Source of the DNA: Chlorokybus atmophyticus
Taxonomy: Eukaryota > Plantae > Mesostigma and Chlorokybus algae
Direction: 5' to 3'
Length of the DNA stretch: 64,000 nt
NCBI GenBank assembly: GCA_009103225.1
Contig: RHPI01002048.1
Span: 1,203,906-1,267,905 of the forward strand
The position numbers and the translations under genes were made by a program. The first letter of the stretch is position 1; every line of letters begins with the position of its first letter. This document shows positions 49,901-63,925 of the stretch, in pieces. Under the pieces are notes generated by a model. The model was not told the origin of the DNA. It worked only from the letters and a program-made list of their open reading frames with translations, and ran no database searches.

Positions 49901-51561
49901 ATGCATGCTTGAGTTTCAGTGTCGAGATGGATGCCGTTAACCATCTTCTCAGTAACAAGGCGAGTAAGGTTGACGTAGCTCAGATGCCCAAACCTCTAGT
50001 GCCACAATGTTGGCGACTCCTTATTCATCACCATGGCTTGAATATCGATGTCTTGAGGCTGCTCCACGTGGTAGAGCCCTCCCGGACCAGTGATTCCAAC
50101 AATGTGCACGACCCCATCTAGAATGACTGAGCAGCCACCGTTTAAAAATAGGATCTCCGCGCCTAAGCGCTCCGCAACCCTTACAGAGAGTAGACTCGCC
50201 TTATATACATGCAAGACGTTGCGTAACACCTCGCTAGTGTGTTACCAACCTTGCACTGGAGTCGTACGTTGCCAACTCCCTCAGCCACCAGTACTTAGCC
50301 ACCGAAGCCCGCAACCTTCACTATAGACGTCAGCTTCTTGTAGCTCTCCGTCTCCTCCTTGTTGGGTGTGTGATGACGATTGCAGCCAGAGTCCACCACA
50401 CCCAAAAAGCTGTATTCTCCCTTGAACCGGATGCGGTGAAGGCGACATGTTTCTGCTCGTGATGATGCCTGTTGTTGCTGCTGCTGGTGCTTGCTCTAGG
50501 TTGCCCCTGTTGTTTCTTCCGACAGTCTCGCTCGATGTGACCCGTCCAACCACACCAATGGCATGTGAGGTCTTTGTAACGAGGGTTGCCCGGCTTGTTG
50601 CCCTTGTACTTCTCTTCATGGTTGCTCTTCTTTGCGTGCTTGCCGGTGTAGAAGGCGACGGCATCCGCTTGCTCGTCCTTCTGCACGACTGTCTCCTCCA
50701 CGGTGAGCAGCTTCAGTAGCACATCGTCTAACGCCAACTCCGATGATGACGTCTCCAACAGGGTTGCGACGACCTCGTACTCTGCTGGTAGCCCTGCAAC
50801 AATGGCCAGCACGACCACCATCTCCCCCATGTTGTGGCCGACGTTGATGAGGTCCGCCCATAGCTCTCTTGCGCGTGCAACATACTTCGTAATGGGTTCT
50901 GCTGCCTCCTTCATGAGTGCGCTGAGCTGCTTGCGTAGATGCAACTTTCCGGCATTATTGTTGGCTCTGAAAATGAGTGATAGCTTTTCCCAAGCTTGCC
51001 TACCATTTTCACATGCAGTGAGCACGGGAAAGTGATGCGGTTTGCAGTTCAACACAAGCAAAGAGTGTGCTTCTACCGAGTGCTCTGACCACACAGTGTT
51101 TGCTCTTGGTGTTGGTGGTGGTGCCTTTGGATTAACATACTTCCACACCTTCTTAAGGATGAGCAAGGCCTTCATCTCCACGCACCATGTGTTGTAGTTG
51201 TCGGTGTCCAGCTTTGCAATCTGCCCCTTGTCGTAGGTCGCATCCATCTCTGTCGTGCCTCCCTTTTCTTTCAGTTGACACCCAAGGCTCTGCTACCAAC
51301 AAGCTACCGTAGTGTAGAACTACTATGCACACAAGCTAGTCTCACACTCCTCAAGCGTAGTGTGGGCCCATAACCTGTTAAAGGAGTAGCATGCACATGT
51401 AGATGAGGCAAGCATGGACACACAAAGACAGAGCTACCGCCACCAGAGCATACACAAGTCACATCACATTCATCTATTACAAGTTGTCCGCTGGTTCTTA
51501 TACTAGCCAGTTACATACACGTCTACATTTGCAAGCACTGCGTAAGCTATACTCAGCCTTT
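46920..51561 (-). mobile_element. Ty1/Copia element H (3' LTR 46920-47343; 5' LTR from 51376, interrupted at 51561)
   Basis: gag MDATYDKG..NYNTW, CHWCGWTGHIERDC; integrase VHMDVC..RSDRGGEY..TAPYTPQQNGAAER; RT HLDVKTAFL..VHVDD; RNase H GYCDSD..NCDNQGAI; PBS GGTTATGGGCCC 51364-51375. Confidence 0.95.
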
Positions 51562-53029
51562 TGTTGAGATTTGGACACTAATGATCATGCATGGAGTTGG
51601 TGCAAGCACAAGCACACACACTCTACCAGAGCATACACACAAGGCTGATCCAAAAAAGGCGTTCCAAGGATTACACCAAAGTCACACCACGGGCTTTTAT
51701 ACCCGCCAGTTCTGCACCTGTCTACTCTAGAAGTCACCACGACTTTAACACTCAACAGATTCCTGCGCTCTAAGTTGCACCACGTAGCTACTCTCAAGAG
51801 CTTTTCAACAAGCTATAACACGCGCCATACAATGATGTAACCACAAAGCTACAACGTTTCTTCTATAGCGCCTGGAAGTCTCCAGTCTCCAGACTCGAAT
51901 CCGCGCCTGGAACGTTCTCGACTGAAGTCCTCGCCTGGACCTTTCTCGACCGGCACCTTTTCGCGCCTGAATCTTCTCGCGGCTATTCTTATCCACAGGG
52001 CAAGCTGACCGGATACAAGAATATCCTCAACACTCCCATGCGGGCAGCTTGGCCTTTAACACCTCTAAATGCCAACTCCTTGCGTACTCATGCGCGACGA
52101 ACTCCCACGCTATCCTTTGCTCTTTCAACCATCTTGAAGACACTTCCCGCACCTCTCATAAGTGCCTCCTTGAAGCTTTTCACTTGCACACCCTTGTTGC
52201 AACTCTCATGGTCGTTTGCATGTGTCCCCACGTGCTCACTCTTGGCAACGTCCTGCACAACACCACCACTATACTGCTCCTTCTTGTCCTTGCTGATGCC
52301 AATGCTTGCTTCAGCTCCCACGGGCACCGGGACTGCATCTTCAGTCTTCTTGACACCTTCAGCAACCTCCACACGTGGAATCACTCCACCACTCGCATGT
52401 GACGCGCTCACCATCACTTGAGCTCCCGCTCCCTTTTCAGTAACAGGCACAATATGCGCCTTCTTCTTCATCTTCTTCACATCTGGTGCTAACTTGGACA
52501 CCTCCACCTTGGTCTTCTTGTGCATCTCCGCACCCTTGACCTCCTCGATGATGTAGAGCCCTCCAACATTGATGCCAACCAATTCTGCGATACCACGCAG
52601 CACTACCCTTCCTATGTCCCCACTAAACACTGTCACAGCACCAACTCTCGCCGCGATGCGCATAGAGAATAGGCTAGCCTCTAGTCCTAGGACATGTAGC
52701 ACCTCTCTCAACAACACTTGCCTCGTCTTTCCTCCAACCTGGGATAGGATCTTCGCTTCTCCTACACTAACTACGAGCACCTCCGTCTTGCCAATCTTCA
52801 CCTTGATTGGCTTCTCTAAGACCTTGTACTTTGCCTTCTCACGATCACTCGTCATATGCCTCGTGCAACTCGAGTCCAGCACCCAACTAGCTGCCTCACC
52901 ATCCGTTGTTGCATGAAAGGCGATAGGCGTCTCTTGAACACGTCCCGTCATGGCATGATGCTTCTCTCCACCACGCTCCTCTTCGTGCTGCTTCCTCATT
53001 GAGCACTGCACCCTGATGTGGCCCTTCTT
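51562..53029 (-). mobile_element. Internally deleted Copia D: 3' LTR 51562-52032 plus gag-end/protease/pre-integrase ORF fused to the pol terminus; truncated by the CACTA terminus
   Basis: WVLDSSCTRHMTSD protease motif and GGLY pre-integrase motif in ORF 52088-53032; no integrase or RT; PPT before the LTR. Confidence 0.8.
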
Positions 53030-53074
53030 CACCGGTCATTTTGAGACCCCCGCATGGAGATTCATGGCAAACGC

Positions 53075-53645
53075 ACTGAATATTCGTATGATTTACCTTT
53101 CAGCTTTTTATCGAGTGAATAATCAAGTGTTTTCGTACATTCTGTGCGAGTGAATCATCAAGACATTTCGTACATTCTGTGGTGCCAAAACGAAATTGCG
53201 ACATTCACATATAAATCGCGTAAATATCTACACAATAAATCAATGCCACCTGTACAAACCCATATACCTTGTATATTCAGTTGAAATCGATTGAATGTTC
53301 AAGGGCATGCAATTGTGAATGGACACAGCATGTGCTCTGCTAAATATTCAGCTATACATTGCCTGAACATTCATGAAGGGGCATAAGCTTGTGGCTATAA
53401 CAGACAGCTTAAACTCACCAAGTCCCAACTGCTCGTGAATAATCAATTGATCAGCTTGTCACACATGTATATTCATAACCTTCATCAGTTTCATGCCACA
53501 GATGTGAGTGAACATTCAACACCAATCTAAAACTACGCAATACGATTCACACTAAGTTCTAGCTTTGAGTGAATTTCCAACACCATTCTAAAACCAAGCA
53601 ATACGATTTGCACTAACTCCTAGCTGTGAGTGAATATTCAACCCC
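53075..53645. repeat. Subterminal repeated motif ~GTGAATWWTCAA, as typical of CACTA ends
   Basis: Copies near 53113, 53147, 53432, 53505, 53568, 53626, plus degenerate ones. Confidence 0.6.
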
Positions 53646-53851: not shown

Positions 53852-54975
53852 CTAGCTCAACTCATGTCTTTGCTGTGCTAACATACTGTCCATGAGTGTT
53901 CGCAATCGTCTTCTCAACCTGTCTGCCACTTGAGGATGAAACCAACTCCTTTGCATCTGCACACAACCACACAGCAATAACATGTGGTTACTAAGCACGT
54001 GTCGGCCTACACGACAGTGCCACTGAAGCACCTTCCACTTGTAAACATTGCAGTGCACATGCATGAACTGTACATGTTGAAATATCCATATGTTTGGGTC
54101 AATTTGACCAGCTTGTACCCCATCTACAAACTTGTCAAGATAAAGCATGACAAACAACCCGCACGCAACTCCATCCTTCTGCTGAGGGACCTGCACAAAC
54201 ATGTGTCAATGCTTGCAAACCAAATGCATGTGCATGCATCCAATCAGTGCTTGTGACAGAATGCATGCAAACTCATCACTAGTGCAATGCAACGTGTGCT
54301 ACCTGTGGTACAAGAAGCTGTACGTTTTCGGGAGAGAAGTGTCGTTGTGAGTCACTTCCATGCTTTCTGCCCCATATGTAGTTAAGGTAAGCGCGCATAG
54401 GTCCATCAACGTTGCGATGCAGGCCAAGGGAGTCGAGATGGACGAGTAAAGGCGGCGTGTCACTTCCAAGTTGGCCTCCAGGATTGCACACAAGCAGCAG
54501 ACTCCAGTGAGTCCTGTGTACACAATCAAATAATTCCAGTTTGCAAATACAGCAGCAATTCAGCAAGATATTCTTGGCGCTTATTCTCACCGCTTGTCTG
54601 GGTGACAATTACTCCCCGCAAGTCTTTGGCAAATGATCACTCTCCCACCTGTCTATCCTATGATTGATCGTGTGCCAGTCATTTTGTCTATGGCAGCGCA
54701 CGATCCTGGTGTAGATATGCGGGTGGAACAGCTTCACCTGAATGCCATCTGCTCTGCCTAAGATTTCCTCTTCCTTGTATCTGCATGTGCATCCCACGTA
54801 CATATGAGATACACTAATAACACAAACGCAACAAATCGTATACCTGCAAAAGAAGTGGAGGATGGTGTCATTGAGCTCTTGTCTGCCATCTAGTAACCTC
54901 CTGTCCGTTTCAAGCACTGGCACCGCATCACGTGCACTTGCACTAGGGTAAATGAACAGTGGTTGCGGTGTTGAC
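53852..54975 (-). pseudogene. Ulp1/C48 SUMO-protease domain (ULP2/SENP6-like), spliced
   Basis: LFIYP..LNDTILHFF; HWSLLLVCNPG (His); LVHLDSL (Asp); VPQQKDGVACGLFV (Gln, Cys); WF.P..RRRLR terminus. Confidence 0.88.
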
Positions 54976-55319
54976 GGCTGCGGGTTGCTGACTGGATCGT
55001 CCAGCACCATGATATCATCATCACTGCCCGAGGTCCACAACTGCCGCAGCCGTCGTGGGTTGCTAATTACAACCCTCTTCGTCTTCATTGTCAACTTCCA
55101 TCTTGACTGCCTCTGCAGCCATAAATGGTTCAATTGGGTAAGAACCACAACACAAATCAACAAGCTCAAGCACACAGCAGCTTACCAGTGTTAGCCTCAT
55201 CCCCACTCTCTTCAACGTGTTGAACCCCACTCTGCACATGTTGTGAAACCCTACCGCAACTGCCCAGTCGAGAACGACGAGCAAGGCTCTCCCTTGGGAG
55301 CTGCGCTGGAGCACCACCT

Positions 55320-55720
55320 TCTTCGTACGCAGCGCATCGCGAGCACGTAACCTCAACCATGCTACCCACAGCGTGCCGTCGACAGAGGCTGTTTGGACAC
55401 GTCGCGCAGACTTGAAAAGCTGCTTCGTTGCAGTTCTTCACATGGCACCTGTGTTTTGGTTCAGTACAAGTGATGATGGTTCTAGGAGTGAAGTTCCTCA
55501 CAACAAGATGCCAAGCATTTGCTGCAATGAAGTCCACTTACTCATGCCTTGGGCACTCCCGATATTCATCCTCCGCAGGTGGCATAGAGACACAGTGCGC
55601 GTGGTAGCTTTTTCAGCAACCTTCCACATCGCAGCCAGATATGGTGCCCCCATCCTTGCAGACAAAGCAGTAGTCTTCATGTTCCCGATGTTCCAACGCA
55701 TCCAGCTCCAGTCTCGGTCT
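55320..55720 (-). pseudogene. NSD-type PHD-C5HCH tandem zinc-finger module (intron 55449-55541)
   Basis: Manual splice: EDYCFVCKDGGTISGCDVEGC*KSYHAHCVSMPPAEDEYRECPRH E|CHVKNCNEAAFQVCATCPNSLCRRH; one TGA at 55613-55615. Confidence 0.8.
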
Positions 55721-55834
55721 CATCCTGTGAACAAAGGTTCAGTGGCCAGGTCTACAGTCTCACAGTAGGGATATGAGGCATCACAATCGCAAACAGTACC
55801 TCTTGTACTTAAAATGCCAGTCGCGGCGTGTGGT

Positions 55835-58800
55835 CTATGACACCTTGCTCGAGGCGCTATTGGTTTCGCTTCGGGCACCCTGCACCAAGTACACAAGATG
55901 GTTGTATGTGATGCTAAAACCCAGGATATATGAGGACATCCAGATTCTAATGGACAACGTTGTCAACTCTCCTCTTACCGAAGTTTCCCGGTGCATGCCT
56001 CGACGCATGAGACTGCGCCTGTCTTTAACAAGCGCTACTACTGTTACTTTGTTGTCATGGGGATCAATTCCCTCAAACCACTGGCCCTTGACCTGCCAGC
56101 AAGAAGGGATATTCATCAGCCATTTTCATACTACTATTTCAATTTACTATCATCACACCAAGCACACGCCAAAACGATTGCAACACAGCCACTTACCAGG
56201 TTGCAATCAAGGTAGGTTTGTTGTGCAAAGCAGGGCTTGTCTTTTCTTAGGATTGCAAATCCTCCACTGTGCTAGACTTGGTTGCTCATGTACCACCTAG
56301 CTCTGAGCAGCTGGTGCTCCCAACCAGCTATCACCACAACATCAAAAGATTGCACCCTGCCATACCAATGGGTCTTCTTGGTTGGGTCATCTGAGTCACG
56401 CCCAACGGTAAACACGCCACAGTCCATGGTGTGGAGTTTCTTCTCCATTTCCTCTACTCTGAACTGACCGATGTCCTTGTAGCGTGCTCTGAAATATCGC
56501 TTGATGTACTTTGGAAAGATTGGACCGCTCAACAGCTCTATCTCGTGCTTTGTAAGCTCCCTAGCAGGTCCACGCCAGTGATGCAGCTTAGTCATATGCT
56601 CCATGTCCTTTGCCACGACATGTCCTTGTTTTGAGCCCTTTCCCTTGCCATCCTGCGTTTGTTCACCTCCCGACTGAACTCTCTGTGTAGCAGCAACCCA
56701 TAAATAAGTCATATTGTGTGCGCGTTGGACATCACGTAAAAAACAGCAACTCCCAAAGCAACTTACTCTTTTAACAGCCTGTATTCATCATCATTTTCAG
56801 CCAACCACCACTCGAGCTCCTGCCTTGTCTTACTATCTTTATCCCCAACCTCAATACGGTGTCTCCGTCCGCAGAGCACATAGTCGTCATCATCTCGTTG
56901 CTTGCCCGATCGCAAACTGATGTCGGAGAAATGTCACTTTAAGGTGTCCATGTAAGTGTTCAGCATGAGCTGGATAGAGTATCTGCAGATGCAACTGGCA
57001 CTTGAACAAGGCAAACAATGTGGAAAGTTTGCACGTAACTCTCAGTGGGCTCACACAAAACTTGCCTTTTGCAGATGCTTGCTTCCACATGCTGCCTTGC
57101 AAATATCATGCGCTTCACCCACTGCATAAAGCGTTCATGTGCCCACTCCCAGTGGTCACGCGTCGGACCAAGCCACATGCACTGCTCTGGTAGATGGCCA
57201 AGGAGGTGCAGCATCATTGTGAGAGAAGTCCGCGAGCCTCATGCACGTGCACCTGCACTAAGTAATAAGCTATGCATGCCATAGGAGCTGGGCATGCAGA
57301 GTAAAGTGTTATTAAAGCCAACCTTCAATTCTTCGAGGTGTGACTGCTTTACTTCCAATGCAGTCAGCCGTTGATAGATGTCGCATAGTTTGAAGATGGT
57401 TCTCTTCTGATCTTCTCCAATGTCGTGTGCAGAGCGCAGCACGTACTGAAAAACGACCGACCATAAGTTGTGCTTGTCGTGCAATTTCATCGAGCCTGCA
57501 TGCTCCATGTAAAAAGTTCCATGCATGGAGAATCATTGCTTTAGCGTAAACACAAAACGTATAACGGCTATCTCACCTAAATGCTTTGTGAAAGACTGCA
57601 GTTTCGAGCCGAAAGTGCTTGAAACCCTCACGCCGGAGAGCAATTGCTCAACCAGTCCTACATCTGTGATTGTCCATGGAGCCTGGGGTTTCACCTTGAC
57701 TGCGATTTCCTTTCCATCCTTCATCTTCATCGCTGTCTGCAGCACATAGGTTCAAGTCCTTAGTTAAATCCAACTATGGCACATGTCAACAAGGCCGACT
57801 ACATACGTACCTCTAGCCAAAGTTTAGGCATGCGGCCTTGCTGCTACAGATCTTCTCGTAACTCGATGCTGTCGCACAAGCCAGCTAGGAGATTTGCAAA
57901 GTTGGTTGCCGGGTTGGCAAAAATGTGCATAGGGCCAACCACATGACCTTTGACAGATTTTTGTAGCGGTAGCCAATATGGAAGGTCGCGATAACAGCTC
58001 AGTCCAAGGATGCCGGAGGACTTTGAAGGATGTTTCTTGGAGTGCAGTGGACGCTTGCTGTTGCGAGATGTCATAGCATACCTGATCACATGGCACCCAT
58101 TGCTGACATACCTATGTTCTGCAACCGAATGCGCAATCAACTGAGATTGCTCACCTGTACACGCTCTCTGCAGTCCGCATGGGTGGTGGAGGTCTGTATT
58201 CTGGTTGCGTCCAACGCTCATCAACTCTGTAAGGATGGTCATCCGGTAGGTACCGGCAGTGGCCTTGATAGATCACCTTTTTGAAAAGTTCCACATGTTC
58301 TCCACTGCACTCGCACTTTGAACAGCCAAAGATGGCTCCATGCGCCATCTGCAAGGCAGCTTTTGATGGAGCTGCGCAACCAACATGATGTAGTTCAGTA
58401 GCCACAACCATGGTTGCAAGGACAGTCTGATATACAGATACAGTCAGACACTGATAACAGTAAGTGCAAGCACTGCTGCTGCTTGCGTATCTGGGTAATC
58501 ATGGATTACAATCTCCAGAATAGATCTGCAACGAAAAACTGCGTCGCGGTGGCTGTCATATATGTCTATACCTACAACAAATGCCAGCAGATTACATGCC
58601 TCAGTCATGCGCATTTATCAAGCATGACTTCAGTTATGGAAGCTGCTTATCCTAGCTGCGTTGAAACCATACCTTCCAAGAGATCTCCCAACTGGTCAAT
58701 CATTGGCTTGAGATAAAGCCTGTAGATTCTCTGGCTGTTTGGGTCCAGGGATTACAGCAGCTAGAAATGTAGTGTCTGTCTTGTGCATCTTGGCAATGGG

Positions 58801-60900
58801 CAGGTTCAACACTGAGATTGTGACAACCCAAAACTCATAGTTCCCTGCAAGTCAACAAACCCTTTGCTGCCATTCGTACAGTTACACTGCAACGAGCATA
58901 CAGGAAAAAAAAAGCTCTTTTATACCTTTGTGCGGATCTTTGAACGGGCTCATCCCGTCGATGAACATCGCTAGGCGCACATTGCGTGGTTCTTTGGCAA
59001 ACCGGCTGTAGCGTTGTTCAGTGTCCTTGAACATTGGCGAATCTGACAGCAGCAAGTACACCAAGGGCTTACGACCAACTGCCCCAGCCCCACAGCACAT
59101 TTAAACATGCATATAATCGCAAGGCTGGATACTGAGGTCTTACAAACCGCCCCAGCACCTCGCCGACACACAAACAAACACAGGCAAGGACACCGAGGTC
59201 TTACATGCCGCCTCAGCGCCACGCCAACACACAAACAAACATAGGCAAGGACACCGAGGTCTTACATGCCGCCTCAGCGCCACGCACACAAAAGCACAAG
59301 GCACGGACACTGAGGGCTTACATTGGACTGCCCCAGCCGCTCACCAACACAATTATGCACACAGTCGTGCCTCATTTACCACTGAACTTGGCAATGTTAC
59401 CGTGTATAGATCGCATAATCCCATCCTGACTTCGATTTGTGTACGCCATCATCTCCGCAGCAACACTAGGTTCTAGGTACAGAGCCCTCAGCGCAGCAGG
59501 CACGTAAAAGTAACGCCCAATCTTCCATGCAACTTGTTTACCTCCTATGTTGCGGTAGCGAGGGGCCTTGCAGACTGCATAAGCAAGTCGTATGCTGATG
59601 GTACATGCTAATTAAATCCCATTGTAGTGAACATTTGCAACAATTGCTCACCTTTGCAAAGTATCCTGTTGGCATGTCGGCCACAATACAATATGTGATC
59701 ACAGCGACAGGCATCGTATGTGTGGAAGCCCATGTTGAGGCCTTCAAGGCATTTCAATAGCTCATGCGTGCTGCCTGGCATCTTATTCACCTTAGGCAAG
59801 AGGATGCCACGCAACAACCGGCACACAGTTCTGAACAGGCTGATGTTTCAGCAGTCAGCAGTATTATTTGCCCACCAACCTGAGCAATTTATTCATGAAA
59901 TTGAAGGGTATTCGATGTAGCTGCGGCAGAACCAATAGCAGCATGGAAATGCCTAGAGGGGTTGTACGAGAGCCGAAAACAACAGGGTTGCTTGCATTAT
60001 CCAGCAACGCAGCATTCACCTTGTCAAGTAGCATGGCATCATCAACGCATTTAGCCTCGTCCGGCTGCGATTCCACATCGGTTTCATAGTCTTGGTCTTC
60101 ACCGGCAACATCACCTTGCTCCGCATCACCTTGCCCCGAATTGACTTGCTCAGCAGTGGAGGTGCAGTGCACTGGTGTCTCAGGCTCTACTTGTCCATCT
60201 GTGGATTTGGTTCTGGCACCTTAATGCTCCTGCAATGTAGCATTCTCAATTCCACAAAATGCTGGGTGAGATTCGCGTTGTTCTCCATAAGCACATTGTC
60301 TTTCATGAGCACACGGATTACAACCTGCCAGCTGCAATGAGTCTAGTGGCACATGAACAATGAGAGGCACATGAACAATGAGAGGCACAGCATCAGCAAT
60401 GTCAACATGCCACGCAAGTCAGGTCGTACCTGCTGGTTGCAAGTTTGCTGCAACATTGAAAGGAGATTCAACACTCGGTTGCGACGGCGTGCCTGTGTCA
60501 ACATGTTCAGTAGCGTCGTTCCCAACTAGCTTGATTGTTCGGTGTCATGGAGAGCTTCACCTGGGGCAGGCCAGATTAATGATCAGACAGCCTGTTGTAT
60601 AGATTCACAGCTGTAGAGAAGTTGCTCTTGTACCTGACGACATGTGTAAGGATGCAGCAGCAACAGCAGCATCAACTTCTTCAAGTTCATGGGGTTGTAG
60701 TCGATCACGGTATTCAGGAGCAACAGCTTCTGGAGTGCCACACCACATGTTTTTGCCAAAGTTTTCATAATATTTAGCCCTTTAATTGTGGTTGTGTGTG
60801 AACACTTTGCTCCCTTTGCAGTCACGGCAAAAACACCTGCGAAAGTAGCTCAGCTGCTACTAACATCAAAAGCAGTCAGCCAACATACTGCAAGCAACTT
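55835..60900 (-). pseudogene. Multi-exon CACTA (Tnp2/En-Spm) transposase: transposase-associated Cys motif, Transposase_21, DUF4218- and DUF4216-like regions
   Basis: CFCRDCK (~60830); HTYDACRCDHILY; IHDSPMFK..FAKEPRNVRLAMFIDGMSPF; VLNLP..IPGPKQP; CSKC..YQGHCRYLPDDHPYR; WEWAHERFMQWVK..VEASI; WYGRVQSF..LLRARWY. Confidence 0.88.
59115..59335. repeat. ~58-bp minisatellite (~4 copies) within transposase intron 59043-59400
   Basis: Repeated cacaaacaaacacaggcaaggacaccgaggtcttacatgccgcctcagcgccacgc. Confidence 0.85.
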
Positions 60901-60997
60901 CCAATCAACTTCCATACAGCCAAAGCAAAGACCTGCAGGCACGCTGCCGCCGCTGACACCGCCGCCGTCGCCGCCGTCGTGACTGCCTACCGTAAAC

Positions 60998-61005
60998 TAG
61001 GGTTT
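60998..61005 (-). promoter_or_regulatory. Telo-box-like motif (AAACCCTA) in the short divergent intergenic region
   Basis: TAGGGTTT on the plus strand between the two divergent genes; an 8-mer can arise by chance. Confidence 0.3.
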
Positions 61006-61144
61006 AGGAGACATCCAATCCCGATTCAAAACAAGCTGGAAAGTCAATCCGGATATGCTCCACAGTTTGCGTACGTGCTCCTTTGCTTCTTCCGTCCAGT
61101 GCATTAGCTTCTAGGGTTGGTGTGCCAGGTAGCGTGGCGCCAGC

Positions 61145-62768
61145 ATGCGCGGCATCAAAGTGTGTAGCTTCTGCAAAGCATACTTGGTTAGGAATGGCAA
61201 CAACAGACGTCTGCAATAGCATGAAGAGAAGTGCAAGCTGTACAGTGAGCAGTATGGCTTCTATGAAGCCTGCTGGCACCACAAGGCAAGGGGGGACAAT
61301 GTGAGGCAATGCAGACTGCTGGCACAATGCATGAGGTCAGATTTCTTTGGGAGGAGTGCACTTGCCAGCAGTGCTCGCTTTCCAAGTTTGAGTGCGACGG
61401 CGAGCCCATGAATCACCTGCCTTGAGCACGGCCTGGAGCGTATCACGATGGGCAGATGTGCAATGTGGTTCGACGTCAGCTCGTGCGCAACGGTCGCGGC
61501 AAGTCCACTGTAATCGAAGACGATGTCAACAATAGGGTGAGTTGAACTGTCCTTGCAAACAGCAAAACAGCGCTTGCATGCATGACCAACTTACTCTTGA
61601 TTGCCAAAGGGGAACGCGGTTGTCAACGATGTCGCGACATTGGCTGCTTGGCGGAAGGAGATTGTTAATGAGGGGCAGTCTTTGGTAGCATGCCGCGGTG
61701 TGGTGTACTGGCCAGGAATGAGCTTATGGTATGCAGGCCACATCATCACTTTTTATGCCAACACAGGTATACTGCAAAGTATTAACATGCGCACGCTCAT
61801 GCAAGCACCGGCTCAGGCAAACATGTGGCTCAGGAAAACATACCATCAAGTACGACGATTTCGTTGAGGACCCATAGCTGCACCACATCTTGATAAAGAA
61901 CTAAAACATGGCAGCTGTGCGCGAGGGTTACGACGTAATGGTACGTGTTGGTGGTCAAAGCTGTCTGAAACTGCAAGACTTGCCTGGTCGAGAGCTCGAT
62001 CGGTGGCCCAAGCCCCCACCCCTTCTGATCACACGCACACCAATAGACTCAAACGGAAGACGTTGCAGGCCGCGCGCACTGGATCTCTTTTGCGGCGCTG
62101 GTGGTGTAGCCATGGGTCTGTACATGGCAGGGTTTGATGTTGAGGGCATCGACAACAAGCCACAACCATCATACCCATTCAAGTTCTGCCAGATGGATGC
62201 AATGGACGCTGACCCGACAGCATACGCTACGATGTGGGCAAGTCCTCCATGTCAAGCTCTAAGTGGGGCCATTCCCACTACACAGCGCTCCGCGTACGGC
62301 AATCGATGGGAGCACGTCAACCTGATTGACCCCATAAGAGCCAAGTTGTAGTTGAGCGGCAAGGCATGGGTGATAGAGAATGTCGCAGGCGCATCAGGAC
62401 ACATGACAACTCACCTGAAGCTGTGTGGCACCATGTTCAAGTTGGATGTGTATCGTCATCGCATCTTTGAGACAAACCCTCCACTGCACTCAGACTTGAA
62501 ATGCAACCACACTGGTTGTGCACTTGGAGAGCTGGCCACCCACCCGGAGCAGCGCCGGCAGTTGCTACCTGGGGAGAGGCAAATTTACCCGGTGTACGGC
62601 CAAGCATCTTGCCGTGGCACCATTGCAGGGTGGCGGTCTGCCATGCAGGTGGAGTGGATGGATGCGGAATCGGAAGTCAAGAATGCCATTCCACCAACTT
62701 ACTCTGATGTAGGCAGGCTGTTGCTGGAAGCAATAGGCTTCACTGTTGATCACCCTCCTTTTTACTGA
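61145..62768 (+). pseudogene. Spliced Zn-finger / Tudor / cytosine-5 DNA methyltransferase gene (introns 61537-61609 and 61767-61833), disrupted
   Basis: CSFC..HEEKC finger; Tudor VVYWPGMSLWYAGHIITFYANTG|KHTIKYDD in frame with the MTase; motifs I DLFCGAGG (62082), IV SPPCQ (62241), VI ENV (62376), VIII YRHRIFE, X NAIPP; stops at 61217, 61423, 61875, 61902, 62349 and a probable frameshift in the G-run ~61290. Confidence 0.85.
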
Positions 62769-63235
62769 AAGGTAGAGGTAGCTCTTGATTGCTGGCCACT
62801 TTGTTAGCCTGAACTTAAACCCAACAACAGAATGAGCGACCCGATAAAGTCAGCAAGAGGTCTTAATCACGAGGATGCCTCTGTTTGCCAGCACGGGAAA
62901 GACTGACCTGCTGGGCAGGGTCTCTTTCAGAGCACCTTCATGCCCAATTGCGCCGTCCGCCCACCCGAGACTAGACCTCCTGCGGGTTCACTGCGAACGC
63001 AGGGTATGGTCCAATTAAAGCTGACTCGCGAATGTCATGAACCAGAGGCTCTGAGCGTGTGCACAAAGTCTACAGTACGTCGCTGACTTGCGCGAGACGG
63101 CTCTGCAGGACCACATCCTGCGTTCGCAGTAAACCCGCACGAGGTTTTGTGTCGGGTGGGTGGGCGGAGAAGGAGAATTTCTAGGTTGCTGTGCGCATGC
63201 GTTTAGTTGCGTGCAATCTTTGGACACATGCCGGT

Positions 63236-63925
63236 TTCAGCGGTTGCCGGGGCCAGTACGAGGGCGGCATGTCAACAGCAGCAAGAGGTGTTCTCTCGGG
63301 TGGGTGGGGGGAGAAGGACTGCCAGCCTGAGTTGCCATATCACAAACAGCAACCCAACCCCAGCGGCAGGTACAACCGCCGTCCATTCAAAAGCCCTGGA
63401 GCAGATCGCGACCAACAAGTTCCCAGCAGAGGCTGGAGGTGGTTGAGAAGGTGAAATGCAATCACAGTTAGTATATGCACAAGAGCGATGCATACCTTTT
63501 GACTTACTGCGGACTTCTGTTACCACCTCCACTCTACAAGTGTTGTCACACTTACCTGTGCGCCGTGACTGCATACAAGCGGTTCAGCGGTTGCCGGGGC
63601 CAGTACGAGGGCGGCATGTCAACAGCAGCAAGAGGTGTTCTCTCGGGTGGGTGGGGGGAGAAGGACTGCCAGCCTGAGTTGCCATATCACAAACAGCAAC
63701 CCAACCCCAGCGGCAGGTACAACCGCCGTCCATTCAAAAGCCCTGGAGCAGATCGCGACCAACAAGTTCCATGCAGAGGCTGGAGGTGGTTGAGAAGGTG
63801 AAATGCAATCACAGTTAGTATATGCACAAGAGCGATGCATACCTTTTGACTTACTGCGGACTTCTGTTACCACCTCCACTCTACAAGTGCTGTCACACTT
63901 ACCTGTGCGCCGTGACTGCATACAA
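63236..63925. repeat. Near-identical 347-bp tandem duplication (2 copies)
   Basis: Units start at 63236 and 63583; only a few substitutions. Confidence 0.95.

Follow-up and report, generated by a model that had tools for sequence, protein, structure and literature searches.

A decayed copy of a predicted Tudor-C5 cytosine methyltransferase gene beside an EnSpm/CACTA-type transposase in Chlorokybus atmophyticus, with relatives among giant-virus enzymes

Does the stretch between positions 61145 and 62768 of a Chlorokybus atmophyticus contig, in which a Tudor-like segment precedes a phage-type C5 cytosine DNA methyltransferase, belong to one gene, and if so, how did an alga come to possess it? 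The question is posed by a 64,000-nucleotide stretch of contig RHPI01002048.1 (hereafter referred to as the window), within which the gene is present once. We consider it probable that the stretch represents a multi-copy gene, in pseudogenised form, which travels with or inside an EnSpm/CACTA (Plavaka-like) transposon of the alga, and that intact copies encode a Tudor-methyltransferase. The window copy itself is a decaying pseudogene: no fewer than seven lesions disable it, and it encodes no fusion protein. The following parts of the gene were distinguished (the source of each assignment is given in brackets; the run contigs are described below):

61145..61536, + strand: exon 1, Cys-rich N-terminal region with CxxC...HxxxC and further Cys residues, starting with ATG 61145 (three-frame translation)
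61537..61609, + strand: putative intron 1, 73 nt, GTGAGT...AG, phase 0 (sequence reading)
61610..61766, + strand: exon 2, first three strands of the probable Tudor domain, ...LVACRGVVYWPGMSLWYAGHIITFYANT (Tudor matches of the spliced product)
61767..61833, + strand: putative intron 2, 67 nt, GT...AG, phase 1, within the probable Tudor domain (sequence reading)
61834..61907, + strand: start of exon 3, predicted Tudor strand 4 (GKHTIKYDDFVEDP) and linker (run contigs)
61908..62348, + strand: N half of the methyltransferase (PF00145, phrog_363, actinophage tblastn)
62349..62351, + strand: in-frame TAG dividing the methyltransferase, CAG in the run contigs (tblastn, run contigs)
62352..62768, + strand: C half of the methyltransferase with the tail GFTVDHPPFY (phage tblastn, family alignment, Atlas)

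Within the last of these, the second methyltransferase open reading frame (ORF) occupies 62352-62765 (+ strand), and the single TAG at 62349-62351 parts it from the first one (61908-62348). Three-frame translation and comparison with the run contigs revealed five in-frame stops as well as a frameshift and a deletion of 3 nt:

61217-61219: TAG, exon 1
after 61345: frameshift by a 1-nt deletion, exon 1
61423-61425: TGA, exon 1
61875-61877: TAG, between Tudor and methyltransferase, before ATG 61908
61902-61904: TAA, between Tudor and methyltransferase, before ATG 61908
62349-62351: TAG, methyltransferase
after 62706: 3-nt deletion, C half of the methyltransferase

The preliminary description of this locus had reported a single stop, TAG 62349, which is real but is accompanied by all the other lesions listed. 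Similarly, the 73-nt intron that it placed behind a Cys-rich finger does show the GTGAGT..AG boundaries and phase 0, but the exon that this intron links is broken in the window by TAG 61217, TGA 61423 and the deletion after 61345.

The comparison was made with short contigs from the public runs X1 and X2, which belong to different studies and samples; these contigs are 95-99% alike and together cover the entire stretch. They carry sense codons in place of four of the stops (TGG at 61423, CGG at 61875, TGG at 61902 and CAG at 62349), and they also restore both indels, with one additional nucleotide (T) following 61345 and three (AAC) following 62706; hence, intact or near-intact versions of the gene exist. 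In the contigs, a single open frame contains Tudor strand 4, the linker and the methyltransferase; it runs on from the acceptor at 61834 and includes the 24 codons before ATG 61908. The Tudor had previously been placed in the same frame as ATG 61908, and this is correct for the run contigs, whereas in the window TAG 61875 and TAA 61902 intervene. Within the methyltransferase, the window differs from the contigs by seven synonymous changes and by six non-synonymous or indel differences, at four of which the contigs have the family-consensus residue and the window deviates from it (window>contig: M>R at 62125, restoring GLYR; A>P at 62364, GKPW; H>Y at 62751, TVDYPP; and D>EH at 62706, YSEHVG). 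Of the coding differences, 28 in number, 16 are G:C>A:T changes in the window and four go the opposite way; a CG or CHG context was found for 12 of the 16, although the sample is small. The stop-creating changes visible against the contigs (four of the five stops) are all G:C>A:T, mostly at CG and CHG sites. This pattern fits deamination of 5-methylcytosine (5mC) in a methylated, silenced repeat.

The prokaryotic or viral look of the catalytic part could raise the suspicion that the assembly had joined phage, viral or contaminant DNA to eukaryotic DNA. However, overlapping contigs of the two independent studies cover positions 60900-62900 in the same order as the window, the GC content of the gene stretch resembles that of the remainder of the window, and the pattern of lesions is that of decay in situ. 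A chimeric join, which the preliminary description had named as a possible pitfall, can therefore practically be dismissed.

The catalytic core comprises approximately 235 residues. In agreement with what had been described before, its target-recognition region (TRD) is short, and its motifs are arranged in linear order:

62082-62105, + strand: motif I, DLFCGAGG
62244-62255, + strand: motif IV, PPCQ, with the catalytic Cys
62376-62384, + strand: motif VI, ENV
62454-62471, + strand: motif VIII, RHRIFE
62682-62702, + strand: motif X, NAIPPTY

In an alignment of 105 family members, the window copy retains all 47 highly conserved columns (conservation of at least 85%). When the halves were searched separately, the N half reached 20.7 bits against PF00145 (cut-off 22) and the C half gave no match; because the score falls below the cut-off, surveys applying Pfam thresholds would miss this enzyme. 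PF00145 is, nevertheless, present in many of its relatives. A match to phrog_363, annotated as "DNA methyltransferase", was obtained in PHROGs (E 1.2e-17), and the C half showed an Atlas score of 0.96 to Uroviricota methyltransferase clusters. Each half matched approximately 300 actinophage genomes in tblastn searches (37-42% identity, E 1e-9 to 1e-15), and both fall end to end within one annotated phage gene, e.g., at 68543-68842 and then 68846-69187 of Mycobacterium phage Bobby. Since the halves are colinear with single phage genes, TAG 62349 is a nonsense codon inside one methyltransferase frame, as already proposed from the two halves seen in the window. Generic S-adenosyl methionine-dependent methyltransferase matches in Pfam and NCBIfam (to the halves and the exon ORFs) were regarded as noise.

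Sequence searches of the PDB with both halves found no solved DNMT or bacterial methyltransferase structure as a detectable relative. Membership in DNMT1/MET1, DNMT3/DRM, CMT or DNMT5 was rejected, as no eukaryotic DNMT was present among the PDB matches and the best relatives are compact viral and metagenomic enzymes. The earlier impression of a phage- or actinobacterial-like enzyme, distinct from DNMT1, CMT, DRM and DNMT5, agrees with the PF00145 and phrog_363 results. Judging from these similarities, we predict a compact, unpermuted C5 cytosine DNA methyltransferase of phage type. The actinophage orphan methyltransferases of phrog_363 (e.g., of Mycobacterium phages Bobby and PP, and Streptomyces phage Success) have the same compact architecture of about 210-250 aa and the same motif order but, unlike the window family, are single-domain proteins with no reader module.

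When 1.84 billion representatives were searched exhaustively with HMMER, 2943 relatives were obtained, none of them near-identical (the best has 55% identity), and most of them are metagenome proteins of about 210 aa bearing PF00145. A distinct set of relatives (P0005, P0012, P0019, and P0165-P0172) carries a methyl-CpG-binding domain (MBD, PF01429) between motifs VIII and IX; P0035 is also listed in this MBD-insert clade (loci L009-L011). The contigs encoding these proteins are those of giant viruses (nucleocytoplasmic large DNA viruses). On contig L001 the neighbouring genes encode an mRNA triphosphatase (capping), TBP, topoisomerase II, kinases and YqaJ; on L011 there is a D5 primase-helicase, and on L010, where the gene of P0019 is labelled as Chromochloris, an mRNA capping enzyme lies nearby.

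In unrooted maximum likelihood trees, the window enzyme and the MBD-insert giant-virus enzymes formed one clade (SH-aLRT 98 with 105 rows; UFBoot 99 and SH-aLRT 95 with 58 rows), with four actinophage enzymes and other compact enzymes falling outside it. The giant-virus enzymes (P0005, P0165-P0172, the gene pair of L001, and P0019) show up to 54% identity to the window enzyme. They share with it the lead-in P..G.RRRP, the block IIP..R..YGH.W.H.NLI after motif IV, the motifs CGTMF and FPVYG, and the C-terminal tail G[FYW]T[VL][DN][HY].P..Y. The viral enzymes have the MBD inside the TRD and lack a Tudor. In the window enzyme, the corresponding place is taken by a short linker (about 25 residues between motifs VIII and IX, without an MBD insert), and the family of this enzyme is further distinguished by the predicted N-terminal Tudor, the Cys-rich region with introns, and the transposon context. 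Horizontal acquisition of a prokaryotic or phage writer, as previously suggested, is in line with the position of the enzyme inside the phage-type radiation, but its nearest relatives turned out to be the MBD-insert enzymes of giant viruses. The phylogeny proposed as a check thus places the enzyme in one clade with giant-virus enzymes within the compact phage-type radiation; by sequence, it matches no canonical eukaryotic DNMT.

The approximately unbiased (AU) test did not reject a position of the window enzyme as sister of the viral clade (p 0.70); thus, we do not claim a loss of the MBD, and both a nested position (MBD lost) and a sister position (MBD gained later) stand. The only guide to the direction of transfer is the large prokaryotic and phage diversity set against a small viral and algal clade. 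On this basis, a route from a phage-type enzyme through a giant virus to the alga is likely, rather than a direct transfer from a prokaryote.

Two other arrangements were observed among the relatives. On two giant-virus metagenome contigs from different samples (L001:9239-10534 and L002:1064-2359), the frame of an MBD-insert methyltransferase is cut by a single in-frame stop, which in L001 lies at L001:10019-10021, between motif VIII and the MBD, and which led the gene caller to make two genes. The interrupted enzyme could be a pseudogene, a read-through product or a deliberately split enzyme. Moreover, P0002 as well as P0003 with its 19-member cluster (P0151-P0164) are proteins of about 450 aa consisting of two tandem copies of the compact methyltransferase, arranged head to tail. 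No description of MBD-insert giant-virus methyltransferases was found in the searchable literature, with subscription journals outside its coverage.

What precedes the methyltransferase was recognizable only after splicing in silico. The ORFs containing the two Tudor exons, taken singly, gave no Pfam match for either exon, and an ESM Atlas search with the second exon alone was uninformative. Removal of intron 2 joins ...FYANT to GKHTIKYDD, i.e., ...GVVYWPGMSLWYAGHIITFYANT to GKHTIKYDDFVEDP. For the resulting 66-aa product, both listed Pfam matches are Tudor families, namely PF09465 (LBR_tudor; 19 bits, under the gathering cut-off of 22) and PF09038 (53BP1 Tudor; sub-threshold, E 0.063), and Tudors rank first, second and seventh among the PDB matches. 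The best of these is the Arabidopsis PDS5C/RDM15-type Tudor 7de9_A (E 1.1e-3), followed by the LBR and 53BP1 Tudors. The alignments cover residues 21-62 and span the splice junction at 52/53, which indirectly supports the splice of intron 2; the claim that a 67-nt GT..AG intron (61767-61833) completes a Tudor domain has held up in this respect. Aromatic positions (YWP, WY, F, and YDD) align with the Tudor match, and the positions WP, (W/Y)Y.G and (I/V).YDD are conserved with respect to the Arabidopsis PDS5C/RDM15 (7de9) and MSH6-type Tudors. As all scores are sub-threshold, we regard the spliced exon pair as a probable, not proven, PDS5C/MSH6-like Tudor. The Cys-rich N-terminus, searched with X at the breaks, was assigned to no Pfam family, and a weak match to a LUC7 finger (E 0.014) was dismissed.

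It might be argued that the Tudor and the methyltransferase are not parts of one protein, the enzyme being made by itself, with translation starting at an internal ATG (61908, or 61731 without splicing), and the Tudor-like exons being a separate fragment or a chance resemblance. Such an arrangement would agree with the marginal Tudor scores, the missing RNA joints for the introns in the two runs, and the unspliced ORF that begins with ATG 61731 in the same frame. However, the 24 open codons between the acceptor and ATG 61908 in the intact contigs, and the fact that Tudor matches come solely from the GT..AG-spliced product and all align across the junction, argue against it. Furthermore, at the two Tudor differences (G>V at 61698 and Y>D at 61754, window>contig), the residues of the contigs are closer to the PDS5C Tudor than those of the window. 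We consider separate proteins quite unlikely and retain the fused gene as the preferred interpretation.

The next question is whether this gene belongs to the host or to a mobile element. To the left of it, the following features were identified:

53852..60220, - strand: decayed EnSpm/CACTA-type transposase gene, divergent from and head to head with the methyltransferase gene (Pfam)
58885-59100 and 58154-58498, - strand: tnp2 domain (PF02992), in two pieces (Pfam)
56963-57238, - strand: DUF4218 (Pfam)
55166-55537, - strand: C5HCH finger, NSD-type, decayed (Pfam)
53852-54202, - strand: Ulp1 (C48) protease remnant (Pfam)
53085..53621, no strand assigned: probable left element end, CACTG followed by subterminal GAGTGAA-type repeats
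50330-53032, - strand: Copia gag and Pol beta-barrel remnant

The transposase pieces lie 2-7 kb to the left of the gene, and the C5HCH and Ulp1 remnants have the same orientation as the transposase. Some 50 bases separate the end of the Copia remnant from the CACTG terminus at 53085, and the CACTA-like element therefore appears to have been inserted into a Copia element. Elsewhere, the window consists of debris from Gypsy, Copia and Tc5 elements. Since the gene belongs to a multi-copy family and stands beside an EnSpm/CACTA transposase, it is probably cargo of the transposon and not a gene of the host. Downstream of it there is a palindrome with 60-nt arms that are 85% complementary (62953-63167), and there are two 347-nt tandem repeats, 99% alike (63232-63925), with a shared GGGTGGGTGGG-containing motif. 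The palindrome and the repeats may be subterminal or binding-site repeats of a transposon.

Alternatively, the gene could have remained from a giant virus that became endogenised, or be a host gene domesticated from such a virus, and merely stand beside the transposon. The giant-viral sister or parent clade speaks for this, as does the fact that the right end of the transposon was not seen. On the other hand, the gene is flanked by no other giant-virus genes, its neighbours being a CACTA transposase and remnants of Copia, Gypsy and Tc5 elements; its putative introns are of spliceosomal type, and it has a probable eukaryotic Tudor; and both of its flanks are also found in the run contigs, at a similar depth. 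A viral leftover is in our opinion unlikely, and we continue to favour carriage by the transposon.

Several observations weigh against the proposed multi-copy, transposon-borne fusion gene. The four stops with a sense reading in the run contigs do not include TAG 61217, and the depth of the contigs does not separate paralogues from the allele of another strain. No spliced joints were present in the runs, whose contigs run through both introns and which behave as DNA, including the one listed as "rna". The Tudor scores are all below threshold (19 versus 22 bits in Pfam; E 1e-3 in the PDB). The right end of the element lies beyond the window, so that carriage by the transposon is only proposed here. 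Finally, the protein databases searched contained no full-length Tudor-methyltransferase fusion, either from the source organism or from others.

If the proposed gene structure is correct, intact copies would encode a three-exon protein consisting of the Cys-rich N-terminus, a PDS5C/MSH6-like Tudor, a linker of about 50 residues, and a C5 methyltransferase of about 235 residues. The latter belongs to the clade found in giant viruses, inside a broad radiation of phage and bacterial orphan methyltransferases of about 210 aa, with the predicted N-terminal Tudor of the algal lineage standing in place of the viral MBD insert. The Tudors of PDS5C and MSH6 have H3K4me1 as their ligand. The sequence match to PDS5C/RDM15 is marginal; by analogy with this best structural match, the Tudor would dock on nucleosomes bearing a methyl-lysine mark, perhaps of the H3K4me1 type. 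Docking would tether the compact, probably short-motif enzyme to marked chromatin, where it would write 5mC locally, and the outcome would be a mobile element by which DNA is methylated under the guidance of a histone mark. The viral sisters, which pair the same scaffold with a reader of 5mC, offer by analogy a hint of CG-containing targets and a read-write mode.

In its most far-reaching form, this proposal would assume active intact copies in an algal EnSpm/Plavaka family that captured the C5 enzyme of a giant virus, with the MBD absent and an H3K4me1-type Tudor added, i.e., a three-step relay from phage to giant virus to transposon with a swap of readers. We regard this version as tentative and, on balance, doubtful. 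Were it true, the element would write cytosine methylation where a histone mark sits, and it could shape the unusual methylation landscape of its host. It would also exemplify a natural exchange of reader modules, MBD versus Tudor, with the catalytic scaffold being the same.

In eukaryotes, the methylation of DNA is usually credited to a handful of ancient DNMT families. The parallel drawn in the preliminary description, that with the N4CMT of bdelloid rotifers, is apt as an analogy. This enzyme, said to have been described by Rodriguez et al. in 2022, is reportedly a bacterial N4-cytosine methyltransferase fused to a chromodomain. It resembles the window family by description only, in that a horizontally acquired, prokaryote-type DNA methyltransferase is combined with a eukaryotic methyl-lysine reader. 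The differences are that it is an N4C and not a C5 enzyme, has a chromodomain and not a Tudor, and is encoded by a host gene acting on transposons, in contrast to the transposon-linked gene of the window.

Amongst algal C5 methyltransferases, a reader of the Tudor family has a counterpart in diatom DNMT5b with N-terminal LBR/Tudor or MBD domains (PMC9998398). DNMT5 is, however, a large, SNF2-coupled eukaryotic family, while the window enzyme is without an SNF2 domain and its similarity to DNMT5 is limited to generic motifs. For a Tudor on a C5 enzyme of giant-virus or phage type, no description was found in the literature searched, the coverage of which did not extend to subscription journals.

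Mobile elements equipped with a gene for writing or erasing DNA methylation have been described in several lineages, i.e., fungal Plavaka/KDZ elements with TET/JBP (PMC12730594), the red-algal Plavaka PAG2 with a PF01555 DNA methylase and SET (bioRxiv 10.1101/2025.02.11.637652), and retrotransposons of Symbiodinium and Klebsormidium with DNMT3 (PMC5890265). The fungal TET/JBP and the red-algal PAG2 cases even have the element superfamily (EnSpm/CACTA-Plavaka) in common with the window. The window family differs from all of them in its C5 enzyme of giant-virus/phage type, as opposed to TET, an N6/N4 methylase or a host-derived DNMT3, and none of those was reported with a Tudor. The window copy itself adds only a decayed member of the family. 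If the proposed structure of the intact copies is right, they would be a further, new case of mobile elements equipped with epigenetic writers, here a virus-derived C5 enzyme with a histone reader. As far as it can be judged from sequence, the gene family would thus be a new variation on a known theme, in which the pairing of a Tudor with this type of enzyme appears unusual.

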